DNA of 30,185 nucleotides, taken from NCBI GenBank assembly GCA_965112735.1, contig CBCOSG010000005.1:1-30185 (forward strand), given 5' to 3'. The notes under the pieces are model-generated. The model had not been told where the DNA came from. It did no database searches and was given only the letters and a program-made list of their open reading frames with translations. The position numbers and the translations under genes are program-made. This stretch comes from Phaeosaccion multiseriatum (taxonomy: Eukaryota; Protista; Ochrophyta, other classes). Positions within the stretch are counted from its first letter, which is position 1, and each line of letters starts with the position of its first letter. Shown here in pieces: positions 18,682 to 30,185 of this stretch.

Positions 18682-20220
18682 CTAGAATATTTCGTAGAAT
18701 CATATGATCTTACTTTGTCCAATTCTTAGAGGAACGAGTTTATTAGTTTCGTATACTTTTCGAGATTTAGTAACTAATTTAAATTTATTTTTGATTCAAT
18801 TATCCTGTTGTAATTGATGAAATAATTCAACAATTAGTTTTTTATTTAATGTTTGCTTGGTTTTGTGTAGAAACATTGAATTGGTCTAAAAAGTCTGTTG
18901 CATGGAATACCTTTTCTAAACTATTAGTACTCATACACTGGATAATTTGAAGCTTTACTTGCAATTGGTAATTTGTTTGATAAATAATAAACGAAGAGGG
19001 GGAAAGAAAATGGATAGTGATACCAATACAACTGCTCGGCTATAAGAATTTTGGTAACCAAATACTTATGTTCTTTTTATATTTCTACAAAAGTAGTGGA
19101 CGCTACACTTCGAAAGTAATCATCAGAAAAAATAGTAATATCAGGAGTGTTATGCTTAAGATCTTGTAAAAAGTTTCAAATTTGTGTTGAGTGGTAGTTA
19201 TTATTGTTCTTGATTTTGGTAAAATCCATAAACTCTTTTACTGGTAACTGTATAAGATAATATTTTTGTGATAATAAATATTTTATAAAATATGGTCTGC
19301 GTCGACTAAAAGATAAGAATTGAAGTAACCAGAAAACAGATTTCTGATTCTCAATAATCTACAAATTATTGCTTGGTAAATAACTAGTAACTAAAGAATC
19401 AATAGATTTGTGAGTTTTTCTAGAATAATGAATAAGCCAATTAGTATATAAATCATCAAGAACTAATACTTTCTTGGAATGTTCATAAAAATATTATGTT
19501 AGTATGTCTTCGAAATTATTTGGATGATTCATAAATAAAAAATCTTGTAAGATTGTTTTTTTCATTTCCAATCCAAACCGTAAACCATTTCGTTTCTCAT
19601 AAACACGATAATAATTTGGGCTTTTTCTAAACCCGATTCGTAAAATGAAGCCTTGATGATTTCGAGTATATTCAACAATATTTTTTTTTTGATCTAAGAA
19701 ATGCTTTCCGACAACACTTATTCATAAATGATTCTAAATCACCTTTTTACTCATTAGACTTTCTTTCTCAAAAATAACAAAGATCAAATCGACTAAAACT
19801 GAGCCTATATAATTTAAAAATATTCCAATCGAATTTTTGTGCCCGTAGAGCTTTGTAAATTTGAGTAGCATTCTTTCCAGAGAAATCTATTTTGGTTCCA
19901 ACCTAAAAACTTTTGGCTTCAGGGTTATATTCGTGCTGCCTAAAAAAAACTTTAAATTGATTTTGTCTAGCATAATTGGAAGACTCCGATTTTCATTTGC
20001 TGTTGATTCTTTTTACAACAGTAAAATTAAATCCGAAGTTTTGAAATAAATAGTTTGCAATTGATTTTGGATTTATCAAACCTTGAATGTTGAAAAGAAG
20101 ATAATCAACTTGTAAATTTGTAGATTCGAAACTTAATTTTTTTTTTTTAATAAGTTTACTTAGGGATAAATGAGTCTGAATAACTAATTGATCTATATTC
20201 TTTTTCTCGTATTTTATTAA
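18682..20220 (-). pseudogene. Decayed plasmid-type replication initiator (Rep_trans-like), about 500 codons
   Basis: Manual translation through about 10 stops and 3 frameshifts: LSFESTNLQVDYLLFN..GTKIDFSGKNA..SRFDLCYF..LRIGFRKSPNYYRVYEKRNGLRFGLEMK..YTNWL..LLQFLSF..YHYPFSFP..FYEIF*; 5' boundary approximate. Confidence 0.8.
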
Positions 20221-20542: not shown

Positions 20543-20962
20543 TTAGTATCTTTCACCAGATGGACGACTTTGAACAGAATAACTGTTAAGAGTGTATTGA
20601 ATATTACGACCCGCAGTTTCAGTTCTATCTAAGTAGAAACCAGGTTCTTGTTGTGGGCGTGAAACAATATATGACATAACACAACTTTCAGTACCAATAC
20701 TTGCATCGAAAGCATTAATTTTGATGTAACCAGTAGTATTAACTCTACGGCACTCAGCTAATTCATACATTACTGCAGCAGAATCTTTAATATCAAACAA
20801 TGGAAGACCCCATAATTCCCAGTAGCAGTTACGTGGATGTGGATCATCTGTCCATTCAACACTAATTGCCCACCCGTTATTGATGGCATATTCTACTTGT
20901 TTTTTAATTTGTGCATCATCTAAATCGTTTAAAAATGAAAAACAACCTTGTGTAAGTCTCAC
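20543..20962 (-). CDS. rbcS: RuBisCO small subunit, form ID (GTG start)
   Basis: MRLTQGCFSFL, WTDDPHPRN.YWELWGLPLFD, C-terminal GERY. Confidence 0.99.
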   Translation of the reverse strand: MRLTQGCFSFLNDLDDAQIKKQVEYAINNGWAISVEWTDDPHPRNCYWELWGLPLFDIKDSAAVMYELAECRRVNTTGYIKINAFDASIGTESCVMSYIVSRPQQEPGFYLDRTETAGRNIQYTLNSYSVQSRPSGERY

Positions 20963-21136: not shown

Positions 21137-21937
21137 CTAGTTAATGAGATTAATTAATAAATTAGTTAATTCTATTATATCAACAGAGAAAGAGTTTTCT
21201 AGAGCGTCTTTTCGCATCTCAATTTCCTCCTTAAGAGTATAAATAAGATTTTCTTGTTCAGTAATAGTTTTAAAGAGATTTTTAATTACTATTGTTTGCC
21301 CTTCACTTTCTTTAATTTGTTCTTCAATTATTGAAATTTTCTCTTCAAGTATTGAATCAGTTGATAAAGCAGTTATTTTTATGTAAATCAGTAGTCCTAC
21401 TACTATTAAAAAAAAGAACCATACAATTTGTAGAGTGAATTCCTCACGTCGAGTAAGTTCGGTTTGTTGCCTAAAATAGGCCCTTACGTTTCGAAGATGA
21501 CGTTTTTCTCGTTTGTTTAATTCTTTGCCCTCTTTTCTCAGAACGCTAAGAAATAGTTTTCTTTGGATAGAAGCTCTTCCTAAATCTTTAAGAACTTCAT
21601 TTTCTCGCTTCTTAAGCTTTTTTCTTTGCTCAGAAAACTGTTTTTGTTGGTTTGAAATAGACAGCTTCTGGTCAGTAATGTCTAGAGTGTCTTTAAAAAT
21701 CTTTTCTTGTTCTTTGATAATTTCTTTTTTAAATTTTAAAAGTGTTGTTATTTGCGTTACAAAAAGTGCATTATAGTCTTGTTTTTTAATCTCTTCTTGA
21801 AGTTTCTTAGTACCCTCAGTTATTTCTCTTAATTTTTTATTCTTTTCTCTTTGTAATTTTATTTTTTCTATAGAAAGAATTAAAGATTTTGAGATTGACC
21901 TGCGTACCCGTCGTAATATCCAACTAATATTTATCAT
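21137..21937 (-). CDS. Orphan 266-aa coiled-coil protein with a single TM helix, in the rbcL-rbcS spacer
   Basis: Uninterrupted 801-nt ORF in very AT-rich DNA, ATG start, same strand as rbcL/rbcS; K/E/Q-rich helices flanking FTLQIVWFFFLIVVGLLIYI. Confidence 0.75.
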   Translation of the reverse strand: MINISWILRRVRRSISKSLILSIEKIKLQREKNKKLREITEGTKKLQEEIKKQDYNALFVTQITTLLKFKKEIIKEQEKIFKDTLDITDQKLSISNQQKQFSEQRKKLKKRENEVLKDLGRASIQRKLFLSVLRKEGKELNKREKRHLRNVRAYFRQQTELTRREEFTLQIVWFFFLIVVGLLIYIKITALSTDSILEEKISIIEEQIKESEGQTIVIKNLFKTITEQENLIYTLKEEIEMRKDALENSFSVDIIELTNLLINLIN

Positions 21938-22115: not shown

Positions 22116-23612
<1,497 letters not shown>

Positions 23613-26724: not shown

Positions 26725-28572
26725 ATGACTGAAAATACAGCATCAAAAAAAATTGATAAAGTTGTCGGAATTGATTTAGGCACTACAAATTCTGTAATTG
26801 CAGTTTTAGAAGGGGGCTTACCTAATGTAGTTCCGAATACAGAAGGCTTAAGAACTACACCATCAATTGTAGCTTATACAAAAAAACGTGAATTATTAGT
26901 TGGGCAAATTGCAAAACGACAAGCAGTTATAAATCCTGAAAATACATTTTATTCTATTAAACGTTTTATTGGTTCAAAATTTGATGAAATTAAAAATGAT
27001 TCTTTTCAAGTACCTTATGAACTTAAAGCTGATGCTAAAGGAAATATTAAATTAGTTTGTTCAACTCTTGAAAAAGAATTTAGTCCAGAAGAAATTTCTG
27101 CTCAAGTTTTAAGAAAATTAACTTCAGATGCAGAACTTTATTTACAAAAATCTATTAATAAAGCTGTCATTACAGTGCCAGCTTATTTTAATGACTCACA
27201 GCGTCAAGCTACAAAAGATGCTGGTAATATAGCAGGTCTTGAAGTTTTAAGAATTATTAATGAACCTACTGCAGCCTCATTAGCCTACGGTTTAGATAAA
27301 AAAGATAATGAAACAGTTCTAGTTTTTGATTTAGGTGGAGGAACCTTTGATGTTTCCATACTAGAAGTAGGCGAAGGAGTTTTTGAAGTACTTGCAACAT
27401 CTGGGGATACACATTTAGGCGGAGACGATTTTGATGCAGCAATTGTAAAATTTTTATTAGAAGATTTCAAATCCAAAGAAGGGATCGATTTAGCAAAAGA
27501 ACCCCAAGCATTGCAAAGATTAACTGAAGCCGCTGAAAAAGCAAAAATGGAACTTTCTACTGTTTTTGAAACTTCGATCCATTTACCTTTTATTACGGGA
27601 GACCAAAATGGTCCGAAACATATAGAAACAACATTAACAAGAGATCAATTTGAATCTTTATGTAAGGAACTTATACTGAAATGTAGAGTTCCTGTTGAAA
27701 GTGCTATAAAAGATGCAAAAATTAATAAAAATGAAATTGATGAAGTAGTTATGGTTGGGGGTTCTACCAGAATTCCTGCTATTGAAAATCTTGTCAAAGA
27801 ATTATCTGGAAAAACTCCTAACCAGACGGTTAACCCTGATGAAGTGGTCGCACTCGGTGCTGCGGTTCAAGGAGCAGTATTAGCTGGTGAAATAACTGAC
27901 TTACTTTTATTGGATGTAACACCTTTAGCTTTGGGTGTTGATACCGTCGGCGGTCTTATGAGTAAAATTATTCCACGTAATACCACAATACCGACAAAGA
28001 AAACAGAAGGATACTCAACTGCTGCTGATAACCAAACTAGTGTTCAAATTAAAGTATTTCAAGGGGAGCGGGACTTTACAGAATATAATCGATGTTTAGG
28101 AGAATTTGATTTAGGAGGACTTGAACCTGCTCCACGAGGAGTTCCTCAAGTAGAAGTTACTTTTGATATTGATGTCGATGGTATTTTATCAGTTAAAGCA
28201 AAAGAAAAAACAACACAGAAAGAACAAGCAATAACAATAACCAATTCTACAAGGTTAGACAAAGAAGATATTGATCGTATGATTAAAGATGCAGAAGCTT
28301 CAGCAGAAGCCGATAAACTTGAAAAAAGAAAAATAGAATTATTAAATCAAGGAAATTCATTAAAAGACAAAGCTCAAACACAAATTGATAATCTGAACAG
28401 TATAGATAAAGAAAATAATTCCGAACTTATAGAAAAAATAAAAAAAGCTGTTGAAGAATTAAGTCAATCAATTAGTAATAAAGATATTGATTTATTAGAG
28501 AATCAAATAAAAACATTGGAAGGATTATCATTTGAACTTAATTCAATTTTAAATACAAATAATAAAACATAA
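26725..28572 (+). CDS. dnaK: Hsp70 chaperone DnaK
   Basis: [40 protein letters not shown]. Confidence 0.99.
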
Positions 28573-29725
28573 TGACAACACTTATTTTTATTGCATTCGC
28601 AATAATTATTAATTTTTATACTCCAGAAATTAGATAGAGAACCAATCGAGACGGAAGAGTATACAAAAAATAGAGACGTAAAAGGTTTTCCTTATGAATA
28701 TTATAAAGATGAAGTTTTAACATATGAAATGTTAGAATTTCGTATCCGAGCAATGTATACATATTTTATGATGTATATTACCGGTATTTTTTCTGGCAGT
28801 TCGATGCTGAGTCAAGTAGTATTCACACCACCAACCTCGGTGGAAAAATTGATTCCGAATCAACTCGATTCTCAAATCAAGCAAGAAGAATTACTACTAA
28901 CCACACGGAGAGGTGCCATTAATCTTGAGACGTTTAAATTTCTGATTGAATTATATCTGGCATTGACAAGCCTCAAAAAATTCAGAAGGATTTCAGTCCT
29001 CAAGACCCCCAGGACAACACTTTAACTTTGGCCATCCAGGTCAAAGAATGCAACCAAACACACGGGTTGCAGTAAGATCAAATGAGAACCCCATTAATAG
29101 AAATAATGGGGGACCAGGGAATTGCCGGTCACAGAATGTTCCTAATCCTTCTATCCAGGAATTAGCAAACTCTATGAGTCCGGCCCATCGAGAATTTAAG
29201 AAGAAATTTCTCCCGGAACCGGCCCCAGAACGGTATGATACGAGAGAAGTTGCCCCTCCAGTATTTAAAGGATTGGCAACAAATACGAAAACCGGGAAAT
29301 CTGGAAAGACTTCCATGGAGGAGGCTTTAACAATAATTGAAGCCGAATCCAAAAATATGGCTATAGAACCAATTCGGCCGACTAAAGAAGAAATAAAATC
29401 AGTGGATTTAGACTTTAAAGTCCAAGGGCCAGCCCCGTTTACCTATACTGATGTAAAAACTCCGGTAGGATCGGAGATTTTACAGAAACAAGGGCAAACG
29501 GACAATCTAGAGACCGTAAGTTATAGACTCGGTCAAAATATTGTTAAGCAGAAAAGGAAGTTCATTGGTAAAGCCGATGATCTGCTGAGTGAAAAAAATG
29601 TTGGGCATATAGTAGATTTATACTACGTGCCCATTAATGAAAAATCATTCGTTAAAAATAAGATATTAGAAGGTGCCCGAGATGAGGGCAGTGATTCTGG
29701 AATCTCATTTTTAAATGAGAAATAA
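28572..29725 (+). pseudogene. Frameshifted ~383-aa foreign gene: hydrophobic N-terminus, low-complexity linker, PD-(D/E)XK-like C-terminal domain (putative toxin). Joins track ORFs 28729-29025 and 29048-29725
   Basis: ATG overlaps the dnaK stop (TAATG). Removing one T from T5 (28613-28617) and one A from A6 (28975-28980) gives one continuous frame. Motif EEA...DLDFKV...TDVKTP...HIVDL. Confidence 0.6.
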
Positions 29726-29754
29726 ATTATTTATTTTATGTAATACTAAGGTAA

Positions 29755-30168
29755 ATGGAAAAAAATAAACCACATATACTGGTTCAAAATCAATATTTTC
29801 TAAATGAATCGAGCTTAGAAGAGTATATTGCATGGGGTGCTTTGCCTAGAATCTCTTTCGTAGGTTGTCATTTTGAAAACGTTGATTTAATGGGACTAGT
29901 TTTTGGATCTTGTCGTTTTCAAAATTGCACATTTAACCATTTTAACGCTAGGAAAGGTAAGTTTTCAGCTTGTTATTTGGAAGATTGCAAAATGACTAAT
30001 TCGGATATGACAAGAACAGAATTTTACGATACCTATCTTAAAAACTGTGAGTTTTTAGGTGTTGATTTAGCAGCAAGTGATTTTGATAAATGCAAATTTA
30101 AGGGAACAAGGTTTTTAAAATGTAATTTGTATGTAATACTAATTGACGACGTCAAAATTTGGAACTAA
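29755..30168 (+). CDS. Pentapeptide-repeat protein (137 aa, possibly 3'-truncated); candidate immunity/partner protein
   Basis: Regular 5-residue periodicity CHFEN-VDLMG-LVFGS-CRFQN-CTFNH...CEFLG-VDLAA-SDFDK-CKFKG-TRFLK; AAGGT just upstream of the ATG. Confidence 0.85.
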   Translation: MEKNKPHILVQNQYFLNESSLEEYIAWGALPRISFVGCHFENVDLMGLVFGSCRFQNCTFNHFNARKGKFSACYLEDCKMTNSDMTRTEFYDTYLKNCEFLGVDLAASDFDKCKFKGTRFLKCNLYVILIDDVKIWN

Positions 30169-30185
30169 AAGTAATTTGTATGTAA
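30122..30185 (+). repeat. Direct repeat gtaatttgtatgtaa (30122-30136 and 30171-30185), 49-nt period, cut by the window end
   Basis: Exact 15-nt match, both copies preceded by an A4 run. Confidence 0.75.

Follow-up and report, generated by a model that had tools for sequence, protein, structure and literature searches.

What are the two adjacent genes that follow dnaK in the plastome of the ochrophyte alga Phaeosaccion multiseriatum, and how did they come to be there? The DNA analyzed here, referred to as the window, is a stretch of 30,185 nt that makes up an entire contig (C21; CBCOSG010000005.1) of a 67-Mb assembly of 22 contigs (GCA_965112735.1). Close to its 3' end, the window encodes a putative toxin (positions 28729-29725, forward strand; 331 aa in the true sequence) followed by a candidate immunity gene (29755-30166, forward strand) for a pentapeptide-repeat protein (156 aa in the true sequence, which extends beyond an artefactual window end). 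The explanation that we consider probable is that these two genes form a toxin-immunity cassette that descends from polymorphic toxins and reached an ochrophyte plastid genome on a small plasmid of the serC type, similar to pCf1 and pCf2. This explanation draws on homology, the fold and its conserved motif, the pairing of the genes, the swapping of domains along with co-varying immunity genes, the plasmid context, and an interface predicted by co-folding; from these, we infer nuclease activity, toxicity, neutralization, and a biological role. Toxin-immunity systems of the polymorphic kind are known; new here are the family to which the nuclease domain belongs, the kind of immunity protein, and the occurrence in a plastid or on a plasmid.

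A predicted nuclease domain and its pentapeptide-repeat partner

The putative toxin has 40 close homologs (E values from 1.7e-95 to 9e-13), most of them 381-396 aa long and colinear, including at the N-terminus, with all three pieces into which the gene is broken in the window. Full-length homologs are 44-53% identical, and identity over the matched stretch is 38-58%. The family N-terminus, MWTLIxVxLALxINFYSPEI, aligns with a 21-codon open reading frame (ORF) at the beginning of the locus. Judging from these alignments, the ancestral toxin gene encoded ~383 aa, which is the length that the initial annotation had obtained by rebuilding one protein from the sequence after dnaK. From its N-terminus, the protein comprises a hydrophobic module, a P/N/G/Q-rich linker of basic character with a junction motif at its end (...PRIAPKLQENPxxRNN..G.CR), and a C-terminal nuclease-fold domain. 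When 1.84 billion cluster representatives were searched exhaustively and without a profile, 142 proteins matched, the majority over the last ~155 residues alone.

The C-terminal domain (29255-29722, forward strand; residues ~176-331) is predicted, from a structural model, fold matches, and conservation, to adopt the PD-(D/E)XK nuclease fold. The AlphaFold2 model of residues 170-331, built with a 74-sequence alignment, has a predicted local distance difference test (pLDDT) score of 94.9 and a predicted template modeling score of 0.89, and contains the alpha-beta-beta-beta-alpha-beta core characteristic of the PD-(D/E)XK superfamily: in domain numbering, a helix at 24-38, short strands near 46 and at 59-61, a strand at 70-74, a helix at 91-108, a strand at 122-127, a helix at 133-150, and a strand at 156-159. 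Nine residues are near-invariant among the 74 aligned copies, and all nine are kept in the Phaeosaccion protein: E198 (codon at 29321-29323; 71 of 74 copies), R216 (29375-29377), D228 (29411-29413; 72 of 74), D241 (29450-29452; 70 of 74, with E in the remaining 4), K243 (29456-29458; 73 of 74), G268, Q274 and K275 (29549-29554), and H293 (29606-29608). Those given with their forward-strand codons are candidate catalytic residues on the basis of alignment conservation. In the model, E198 lies on a helix, D228 at the start of a strand, D241-x-K243 on the next strand, Q274 and K275 on the following helix, and H293 on the next strand, each of them kept in 70-73 of the 74 homologs; thus, the acidic helix residue, the strand Asp, and the (D/E)-x-K motif of the PD-(D/E)XK active site are in place both in the sequence and in the model. 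The initial annotation had singled out E, DLDF, DVK, and HIVDL motifs in this part of the protein and had predicted a nuclease fold of the CdiA-CT kind; the motifs proved to be present and near-invariant in the family, with the E...D...DxK residues retained in 70-73 of the 74 homologs, and the last ~155 aa are indeed modeled as a PD-(D/E)XK domain with CdiA-CT toxins as the best structural matches.

These matches come from an exhaustive VIA-align comparison against 48,161 PDB chains, in which CdiA-CT toxins occupy ranks 1, 2, 3, and 5, with 5j4a_C at rank 1 (Z 7.7, 109 aa, 3.4 Å), along with 4g6v_A (Z 7.6), 4g6u_A (Z 6.8), and 4zqu_A (Z 5.9). Other matches include AF1548, 2okf (a XisH-like protein), NucS, Card1, PaqCI, HamA, SdaI, and the type VI secretion system nuclease effectors TseT and PA3907. 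The leading matches are PD-(D/E)XK-fold proteins with Z values from 7.7 to ~4, and a Z value under 8 may mean only a common arrangement; the result nonetheless counts for us, since nuclease toxins head the list and the motif lies on the expected elements. In addition, a search of the ESM Atlas retrieved a PT-VENN pre-toxin cluster at a template modeling score of 0.54.

One could suppose, instead, that the C-terminal domain is a non-nuclease alpha/beta domain of a plasmid membrane protein, resembling PD-(D/E)XK enzymes by chance. Foldseek retrieved nothing significant from the PDB (best E value 0.059, with FokI and EcoO109I among the weak rows), a sequence profile of the domain retrieved only spurious matches among PDB chains, no family in Pfam (E ≤ 1), NCBIfam, or PADLOC matched the window domain, and none of the 74 domain members matched the Tox-REase families of Pfam; these results and the middling Z values are what such a supposition can draw on. 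It is nonetheless highly improbable in our estimation, given that near-invariant E, D, D-x-K, Q-K, and H residues fall on the elements where the PD-(D/E)XK site lies, that four of the five top matches among the 48,161 chains are CdiA-CT nucleases and many others are nucleases as well, and that the same domain occupies the toxin position in bacterial proteins described below. The model and the conservation thus support the assignment of the domain to a PD-(D/E)XK nuclease-fold family that has no entry in Pfam, NCBIfam, or PADLOC.

The 156-aa product of the downstream gene has tandem A(D/N)LXX-type repeats and scores above the Pfam gathering thresholds for two pentapeptide-repeat families (PF13599, 3.3e-15, 56.4 bits with a cut-off of 38; PF00805, 8.8e-12, 44.8 bits with a cut-off of 20.2), whereas its scores against the Qnr, MfpA, and HalA equivalogs are far under the cut-offs. 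Its homologs (n = 65) are 49-74% identical. The pentapeptide proteins are only mildly acidic, with isoelectric points of 4.7-6.5. A pentapeptide-repeat gene stands directly 3' of the nuclease-fold domain in 12 of the 13 contexts examined, this genome included, and toxin-pentapeptide spacers at homologous loci measure 9-37 nt, compared to 29 nt here (29726-29754, forward strand, with a Shine-Dalgarno-like AAGG motif at 29748-29751). In particular, inspection of the loci showed this arrangement 3' of P0006, which occurs on plastid-type contigs and on a plasmid; of P0172, P0138, and P0157, with the pentapeptide part fused to leucine-rich repeats in the P0138 context; of P0072, where a second tandem pair lies behind the first; of P0058 and P0137; of a 366-aa family member on the metagenomic contig L022, where the pentapeptide gene encodes 223 aa; and of the domain in Chryseobacterium and in a metagenome-assembled genome of Flavobacteriales. 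The exception is found in Anabaena sp. UHCC 0187 (L030:4513-5574), where the tip is followed by a gene for a 353-aa DALR anticodon-binding protein (PF05746, 1.4e-7). The second pair behind that of P0072 (L012:2398-3580), on a contig that also carries psaE, comprises a 208-aa stand-alone nuclease domain (hhalign probability 98.7%, E value 3.5e-16), with Met at the position equivalent to D241, and another pentapeptide gene; from its sequence, this second pair looks like an orphan toxin-tip/immunity module.

When the nuclease domain was co-folded with the 156-aa protein, a check that the initial annotation had suggested, three runs scored 0.77, whereas the best of three controls scored 0.00. Of 78 solved complexes, 51 attain the mark applied, as do 2 of 108 mismatched pairs; 7 of 44 blind neighbor pairs pass as well, and a pass is no proof of binding. 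The runs agree in at least 64% of contacts, with a partner pLDDT of at least 85. The predicted interface, which lies between residues 246 and 281 of the 331-aa protein, involves domain residues 77, 81, 84-89, 97, 101, 104-105, 108-109, and 111-112; it thus contains the near-invariant Q105 (Q274) and flanks K74 (K243), being formed by the loop and helix beside K243. These predictions support binding of the pentapeptide protein to the toxin.

The cassette might also be a toxin with a protector of a different kind, in which the pentapeptide protein shields the target, such as DNA-bound enzymes or nucleic acid, in the way McbG, AlbG, and Qnr act for gyrase. To our knowledge, the well-studied pentapeptide proteins that confer self-protection all have the target enzyme, rather than the toxin, as their site of action. 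In this cassette, the pentapeptide family is more conserved than the toxin (49-74% compared to 38-58% identity), which is unusual for immunity proteins and would be expected for a conserved host target. We regard this alternative as unlikely, because co-folding places the pentapeptide protein directly on the nuclease with high confidence relative to all controls, and because the two genes are strict neighbors in 12 of the 13 contexts, in bacteria and in plastid elements whose host targets differ, which fits a cognate binder better.

For the preferred reading, in which the partner binds the nuclease itself, several hints bear on what the nuclease would cut. The pentapeptide proteins MfpA and Qnr are DNA mimics. 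The partner of the nuclease possibly mimics nucleic acid too, to which its mild acidity lends weak support, and its pairing with the nuclease hints at a duplex-binding cleft. The nearest structures include tRNases as well as a DNase, and the DALR-domain neighbor in Anabaena may hint at a tRNA substrate or may be unrelated. Going by the modeled fold and active site, the domain would cleave nucleic acid, either DNA or tRNA.

Exchange of tips and scaffolds

Polymorphic toxin systems were reportedly defined by Zhang, Aravind, and colleagues in 2012. Three of their features, namely, a conserved N-terminus with alternative C-terminal tips, a downstream immunity gene that co-varies with the tip, and a toxin domain shared by different scaffolds, are all observed in the family described here. 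With respect to the first, several representatives match just the N-terminal ~135 aa of the query. The shared N-terminal features are the leader, an LRGGG..SEFIIKILLIWTMSQN..GFQPKP block, and the junction PRIAPKLQENPVDRNN..G.CR. In P0141, P0177, P0147, P0119, and P0178, the N-terminal module is common up to the junction and divergent after it; among relatives with other C-termini, the shared stretch spans ~135-190 aa. In the window, the junction, a pre-toxin-like motif, reads RVAVRSNENPINRNNGGPGNCR (29063-29128, forward strand); the family is common 5' of this motif, and the C-terminal domains differ 3' of it.

The identity of the alternative tips and of the genes that follow them speaks to the second feature. 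The C-terminus of P0177 is a colicin D domain (PF11429 Colicin_D, 6.1e-9, 36.6 bits with a cut-off of 25), and P0141, whose contig is of plastid type and also carries psbA, ccs1, and a tyrosine recombinase, shows a weak match to the same family (1.2e-3). The genes 3' of P0177 and P0141 encode colicin-type immunity proteins (PF09204, 27.8 and 23.1 bits with a cut-off of 22), not pentapeptide proteins. P0147 and P0119 have unknown tips, the latter being followed by an unrelated 157-aa ORF. Thus, as judged from sequence comparison, tip and downstream gene co-vary on a common N-terminal chassis, which is the signature of polymorphic toxin systems; the swapped C-termini and co-varying downstream ORFs that had been proposed as a test of the initial annotation were found, in the form of colicin D with colicin immunity as against PD-(D/E)XK with a pentapeptide protein. 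Three metagenomic contigs (L022, L023, and L024) each carry two family cassettes on opposite strands, one with a colicin-D tip and colicin-type immunity, the other with a PD-(D/E)XK tip (366 aa) and the 223-aa pentapeptide gene.

As for the third feature, the nuclease-fold domain is found at the extreme C-terminus of three bacterial proteins, P0138 (1722 aa), P0157 (1122 aa), and P0172 (1152 aa), that begin with the eCIS_core domain (PF13699, formerly DUF4157; E values from 5e-28 to 3e-26) of effectors of extracellular contractile injection systems (eCIS). The layout of these proteins matches that described for eCIS effectors, with an N-terminal DUF4157, a long linker, and a C-terminal toxin (Geller et al. 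2021, PMC8213781). The motifs ...LDFKI.GPPPYKWADVKTPV...QKA...DVLHIVDL are kept, and the P0157 gene has an AAA ATPase gene upstream. The domain is C-terminal also in a 944-aa Chryseobacterium protein and in a 1316-aa Anabaena protein, the latter with peptidase-like domains, so that one toxin domain is carried by eCIS_core proteins of 1122-1722 aa, by proteins of 944 and 1316 aa, and by plastid or plasmid proteins of ~385 aa.

Comparison with the closest known systems indicates which features are shared with each. The best structural matches, the CdiA-CT/CdiI systems of Burkholderia pseudomallei E479 and 1026b, E. coli TA271, and Yersinia pseudotuberculosis (5j4a, 4g6v, 4g6u, and 4zqu; Z 7.7-5.9), likewise have a PD-(D/E)XK core as the C-terminal tip and an immunity gene immediately 3'. 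The likeness to CdiA is limited to the fold: there is no match at the sequence level, the plastid protein bears a hydrophobic leader, its junction motif differs, and neither the window protein nor its homologs have a Pfam match to the two-partner secretion N-terminus, filamentous hemagglutinin repeats, or PT-VENN domain of CdiA. Moreover, the immunity protein is of the pentapeptide-repeat rather than the CdiI type, and the carrier is a plastid plasmid or plastome rather than a proteobacterial chromosome. With eCIS toxins, the shared element is the domain itself (E, LDF, ADVK, QK, and VLHIVDL are kept in the three bacterial eCIS_core proteins) together with the pentapeptide gene that follows each; unlike these proteins of 1122-1722 aa, the cargo of a phage-tail-like injector, the plastid form has ~385 aa, a hydrophobic leader, and no injector genes nearby. 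The third parallel is colicin D with ImmD, given that relatives with the same N-terminal module bear the Pfam colicin-D domain and a colicin-type immunity gene and that the layout of small colicin plasmids is resembled by a ~4.5-kb, multicopy-looking circle with a resolvase. In contrast to colicin D, the tip in the window is of the PD-(D/E)XK kind, no lysis gene or receptor-binding domain is recognizable, and the host compartment is a plastid.

The plasmid carrier and the state of the plastid copy

The genes around P0006 are arranged in the order serC resolvase (217 aa), orf490, toxin (387 aa), and pentapeptide gene (160 aa). The same four genes are carried by L005, a contig with a coverage of 567 that we interpret as a small circle of 4,497 bp on account of a 119-nt exact terminal overlap at 4,497-bp spacing. 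This homologous element has the hallmarks of pCf1/pCf2-type plasmids, that is, a small circle with serC and a protein of the ORF484/482 type, orf490 being equated with that type by its position beside serC and its size alone. The Cylindrotheca plasmids pCf1 and pCf2 carry ORF217/218 and ORF484/482 (PMC2873285), and ORFs of such plasmids are scattered over diatom, dinotom, raphidophyte, and haptophyte plastomes (PMC3971590, PMC9235467). The element described here belongs with these plasmids, with the Haslea plasmids pHSC and pHSM, and with their fragments in plastomes; the common features are serC (ORF217/218), orf490 as the counterpart of ORF484/482, and additional ORFs, listed as hypothetical, that encode ~350-390 and ~138-160 aa. 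The direct homologs of the putative toxin among these are orf384 and orf299 of the diatom Climaconeis cf. scalaris, placed among the nonconserved ORFs in the paper on that plastome; orf350 and orf138 of Haslea pHSC3, reported merely as hypothetical (PMC8070900), are matched by size alone. The cassette described here differs from those reports in that the diatom ORFs are described as hypothetical or nonconserved, with no toxin or immunity role given, and in that the host is a nondiatom ochrophyte. A diatom host was considered and rejected because rbcL is closest to that of Vaucheria litorea (91%) and Chrysoparadoxa (88-89%). Looking up the exact sequences of rbcL, dnaK, and an ilvB-like protein encoded nearby gave no match.

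Within the window itself, a decayed orf490 homolog lies at 18876-20148 (reverse strand), in two pieces (E values 1.3e-32 and 4.7e-14; 32-36% identity) with ~10 stops; orf490 has no Pfam match. Only this remnant and the toxin-immunity pair were seen in the window, and no search of this genome for serC was made. The plasmid-like origin put forward in the initial annotation thus gains a concrete counterpart in the 4,497-bp circular serC plasmid bearing the same pair, and these sequence relationships support a plasmid origin of the cassette and its integration after dnaK.

The same context raises the possibility that the nuclease serves plasmid DNA transactions, through homing or restriction-like cutting for integration or through the resolution of replication intermediates, with the pentapeptide protein as a DNA-mimic regulator. 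The pair always travels with serC and orf490 on a 4.5-kb circle and is found inserted at many plastome sites, PD-(D/E)XK enzymes include resolvases and restriction enzymes, and DNA mimicry of the MfpA/Qnr kind has a weak echo in the family matches here. Such a role looks decidedly unlikely to us, given that the same domain tips eCIS effector-type proteins unrelated to plasmid maintenance, and that the same N-terminal module bears in relatives a colicin-D tRNase domain with its immunity gene, a combination with no integration role.

How far the cassette is intact in this particular genome depends on which features of the contig are real. C21 is a redundant duplicate, ~30 kb long, of positions 65919-~96100 of C18, the plastome contig (108,425 bp), and carries at least two assembly artefacts. 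Downstream of the dnaK stop (28572), the window shows three ORF pieces in three different frames. The G+C content is 0.40-0.45 in the mid toxin region and 0.22-0.33 in the flanks. The first piece (28572-28637, forward strand) is the remnant of the toxin leader, 21 hydrophobic codons and a TAG in a frame that differs from the remainder; its sequence recurs unchanged in C18, and it can be aligned with the N-terminal end of full-length homologs. The two larger pieces, of 98 aa (28729-29025, forward strand) and 225 aa (29048-29725, forward strand), are split by an extra A in a homopolymer that reads A6 in the window (28975-28980, forward strand). In C18, the run is A5, and the pieces fuse into the intact 331-aa ORF (L001:1183-2178); one base is likewise omitted at 28975 in all four read-derived assemblies (X1, X2, X4, and X5, from two samples and two studies). 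The last 19 nt of the window (30167-30185) are a near-copy of 30117-30136 and create a false stop at 30166-30168, which shortens the small ORF to 137 aa (29755-30168) compared to 156 aa for the corresponding ORF of C18; past 30170, the contigs of all four runs continue as C18, unlike the window. Since C18 and all four runs disagree with the window at both places, we conclude that the A6 run and the contig end are artefacts of C21.

The first frame break (28632-28640, forward strand) is of another nature. It combines a one-base frame change with an in-frame TAG and splits the leader from the gene body; since C18 has the same sequence and an indel was reported for none of the four runs (two samples), the break is real in the organism. 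Here, homology shifts from frame C (...PEIR) to frame A (REPIETEEY...KGFPYEYYKDEVLTYEMLEFRIR), and the open frame 5' of the first ATG (28641-28728, forward strand) is homologous to family residues ~25-52 (...KGFPYEYYKDEVLTYE). A join inside the T5 run at 28613-28617 was rejected because homology puts the break after ...NFYTPEIR, and the explanation of both frame breaks as sequencing errors was rejected as well, given that only the A6 run is one. The initial annotation was, accordingly, right to assign the leader to the gene and the small ORF with its Shine-Dalgarno-like signal to a position 29 nt downstream, and its description of the N-terminus as hydrophobic agrees with the family leader; its IINFIL join in the T5 run and the 137-aa length have to be abandoned, and the second hydrophobic stretch that it described is not supported for this copy, in which the Kyte-Doolittle mean over 19 residues stays below 1.5, whereas homologs reach 1.5. 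The Kyte-Doolittle scan thus lends no support to a strong transmembrane helix in this copy.

By the sequence of the locus, a real frame break has cut the first 21 codons off the toxin gene of this genome, which may be a copy in decay. The cassette could then have the ancestry proposed here and be a dead relic in this genome, with the leader lost after integration, a toxin that is no longer made or no longer toxic, and a pair that persists only through shortness of time. In accord with this, both assembly copies and the four runs carry the break and the in-frame TAG, the N-terminal module of this copy is more diverged than the nuclease domain (e.g., FLIELYLALTSL compared to FIIKILLIWTMS in the family), the plasmid gene orf490 in the window is full of stops, and no listed run is on record as RNA. 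We consider this possible, if doubtful, because the 331-aa and 156-aa ORFs remain intact in an AT-rich genome in which random frames close fast, all nine near-invariant residues are kept, and an intact immunity gene beside an intact nuclease domain is what would be expected of an addiction module. Furthermore, the internal ATG from which the 331-aa ORF starts encodes a Met conserved across the family, and the homolog P0002 is called from that same Met. The signs as to activity of this truncated copy are mixed: its leader has been severed and its N-terminus has diverged, whereas both ORFs are intact and the key residues are kept.

Several other features of the region were noted. A 266-aa intact ORF (21137-21937, reverse strand) lies between rbcL (22116-23576) and rbcS (20543-20962). 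Approximately 1.7 kb 3' of the cassette, separated from it by short ORFs only, is an 856-aa ORF (L021:3855-6425, reverse strand; C18:~97854-100424) that by eye resembles an ilvB-type thiamine-pyrophosphate enzyme with a long N-terminal extension, and beyond it follow an rpl19-like gene, trnM, and trnR. Run X4, the kind of which is not on record, yielded very deep short contigs (up to ~20,000x, and ~140,000x summed) at 28300-28411, the 3' end of dnaK, where a loose end at 28333 consists of 14 A; the whole cassette is on one 3.3-kb contig with a depth of 580 in this run. One possibility is that X4 was made from RNA and shows a dnaK 3' end that had been processed or polyadenylated.

Implications for plastid plasmids

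A number of the observations above weigh against the toxin-immunity reading: the Z values under 8, the nonsignificant Foldseek result, and the absence of matches to Pfam, NCBIfam, PADLOC, and Tox-REase families; the passing of the co-fold mark by some neighbor pairs, the exceptional Anabaena locus, and the strong conservation of the pentapeptide proteins; and, for this copy, the frame break, the diverged N-terminal module, and the lack of a run recorded as RNA. Toxicity, rescue, and substrate aside, the sequence comparisons and models partly confirm the observation with which this analysis began and support its toxin-immunity interpretation. On that interpretation, the C-terminal nuclease would cut nucleic acid (DNA or tRNA), the pentapeptide beta-helix protein would bind it beside the active site and keep the carrier safe, and plastid or plasmid lineages that lose the pair would be at a disadvantage, resulting in addiction or killer behavior.

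Selfish elements of this general kind have precedents. The cytoplasmic killer plasmids of yeast carry tRNase toxins and are a precedent on a eukaryotic extrachromosomal plasmid. For an organelle, the nearest precedent for a selfish module of the toxin/antidote type appears to be the bacteria-derived restriction-modification system in the mitochondrion of a protist (PMC8099122); there, DNA appears to be protected by methylation, whereas a binding antidote is proposed here, and both the protein families and the compartment differ. A literature search of incomplete coverage found no toxin or immunity role assigned to the ORFs of these plasmids and plastomes, nor any pairing of a PD-(D/E)XK toxin with pentapeptide-repeat immunity. 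As far as this search showed, the cassette, if it is what we propose, would be the first toxin/antidote system assigned to a plastid.

Plastid genomes are viewed as streamlined, with few foreign genes, mostly recombinases of cryptic plasmids known since the early 1990s. Neither the benefit nor the persistence of these foreign genes has so far been explained, and an addiction or killing module would provide the means. More broadly, and tentatively, small algal plastid plasmids might be bacteriocin-like killer or addiction elements with interchangeable nuclease tips, among them PD-(D/E)XK and colicin-D tRNase domains, and matching antidotes, still active in plastids, where they would bias the inheritance of plastids or plasmids or, after release, hit competing cells, and the pentapeptide beta-helix might be a new class of immunity protein acting via nucleic-acid mimicry. 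The occurrence of pentapeptide-repeat genes beside the domain in Bacteroidota, in metagenomic bacterial loci, and in algal organelle elements suggests that these proteins are a widespread immunity class. If this picture is correct, it would tie the mobile elements of organelles directly to bacterial conflict systems, including eCIS, contact-dependent inhibition, and colicins, and would explain the persistence and spread of cryptic plasmids and their insertions in diatoms, raphidophytes, haptophytes, and the Vaucheria-like lineage.

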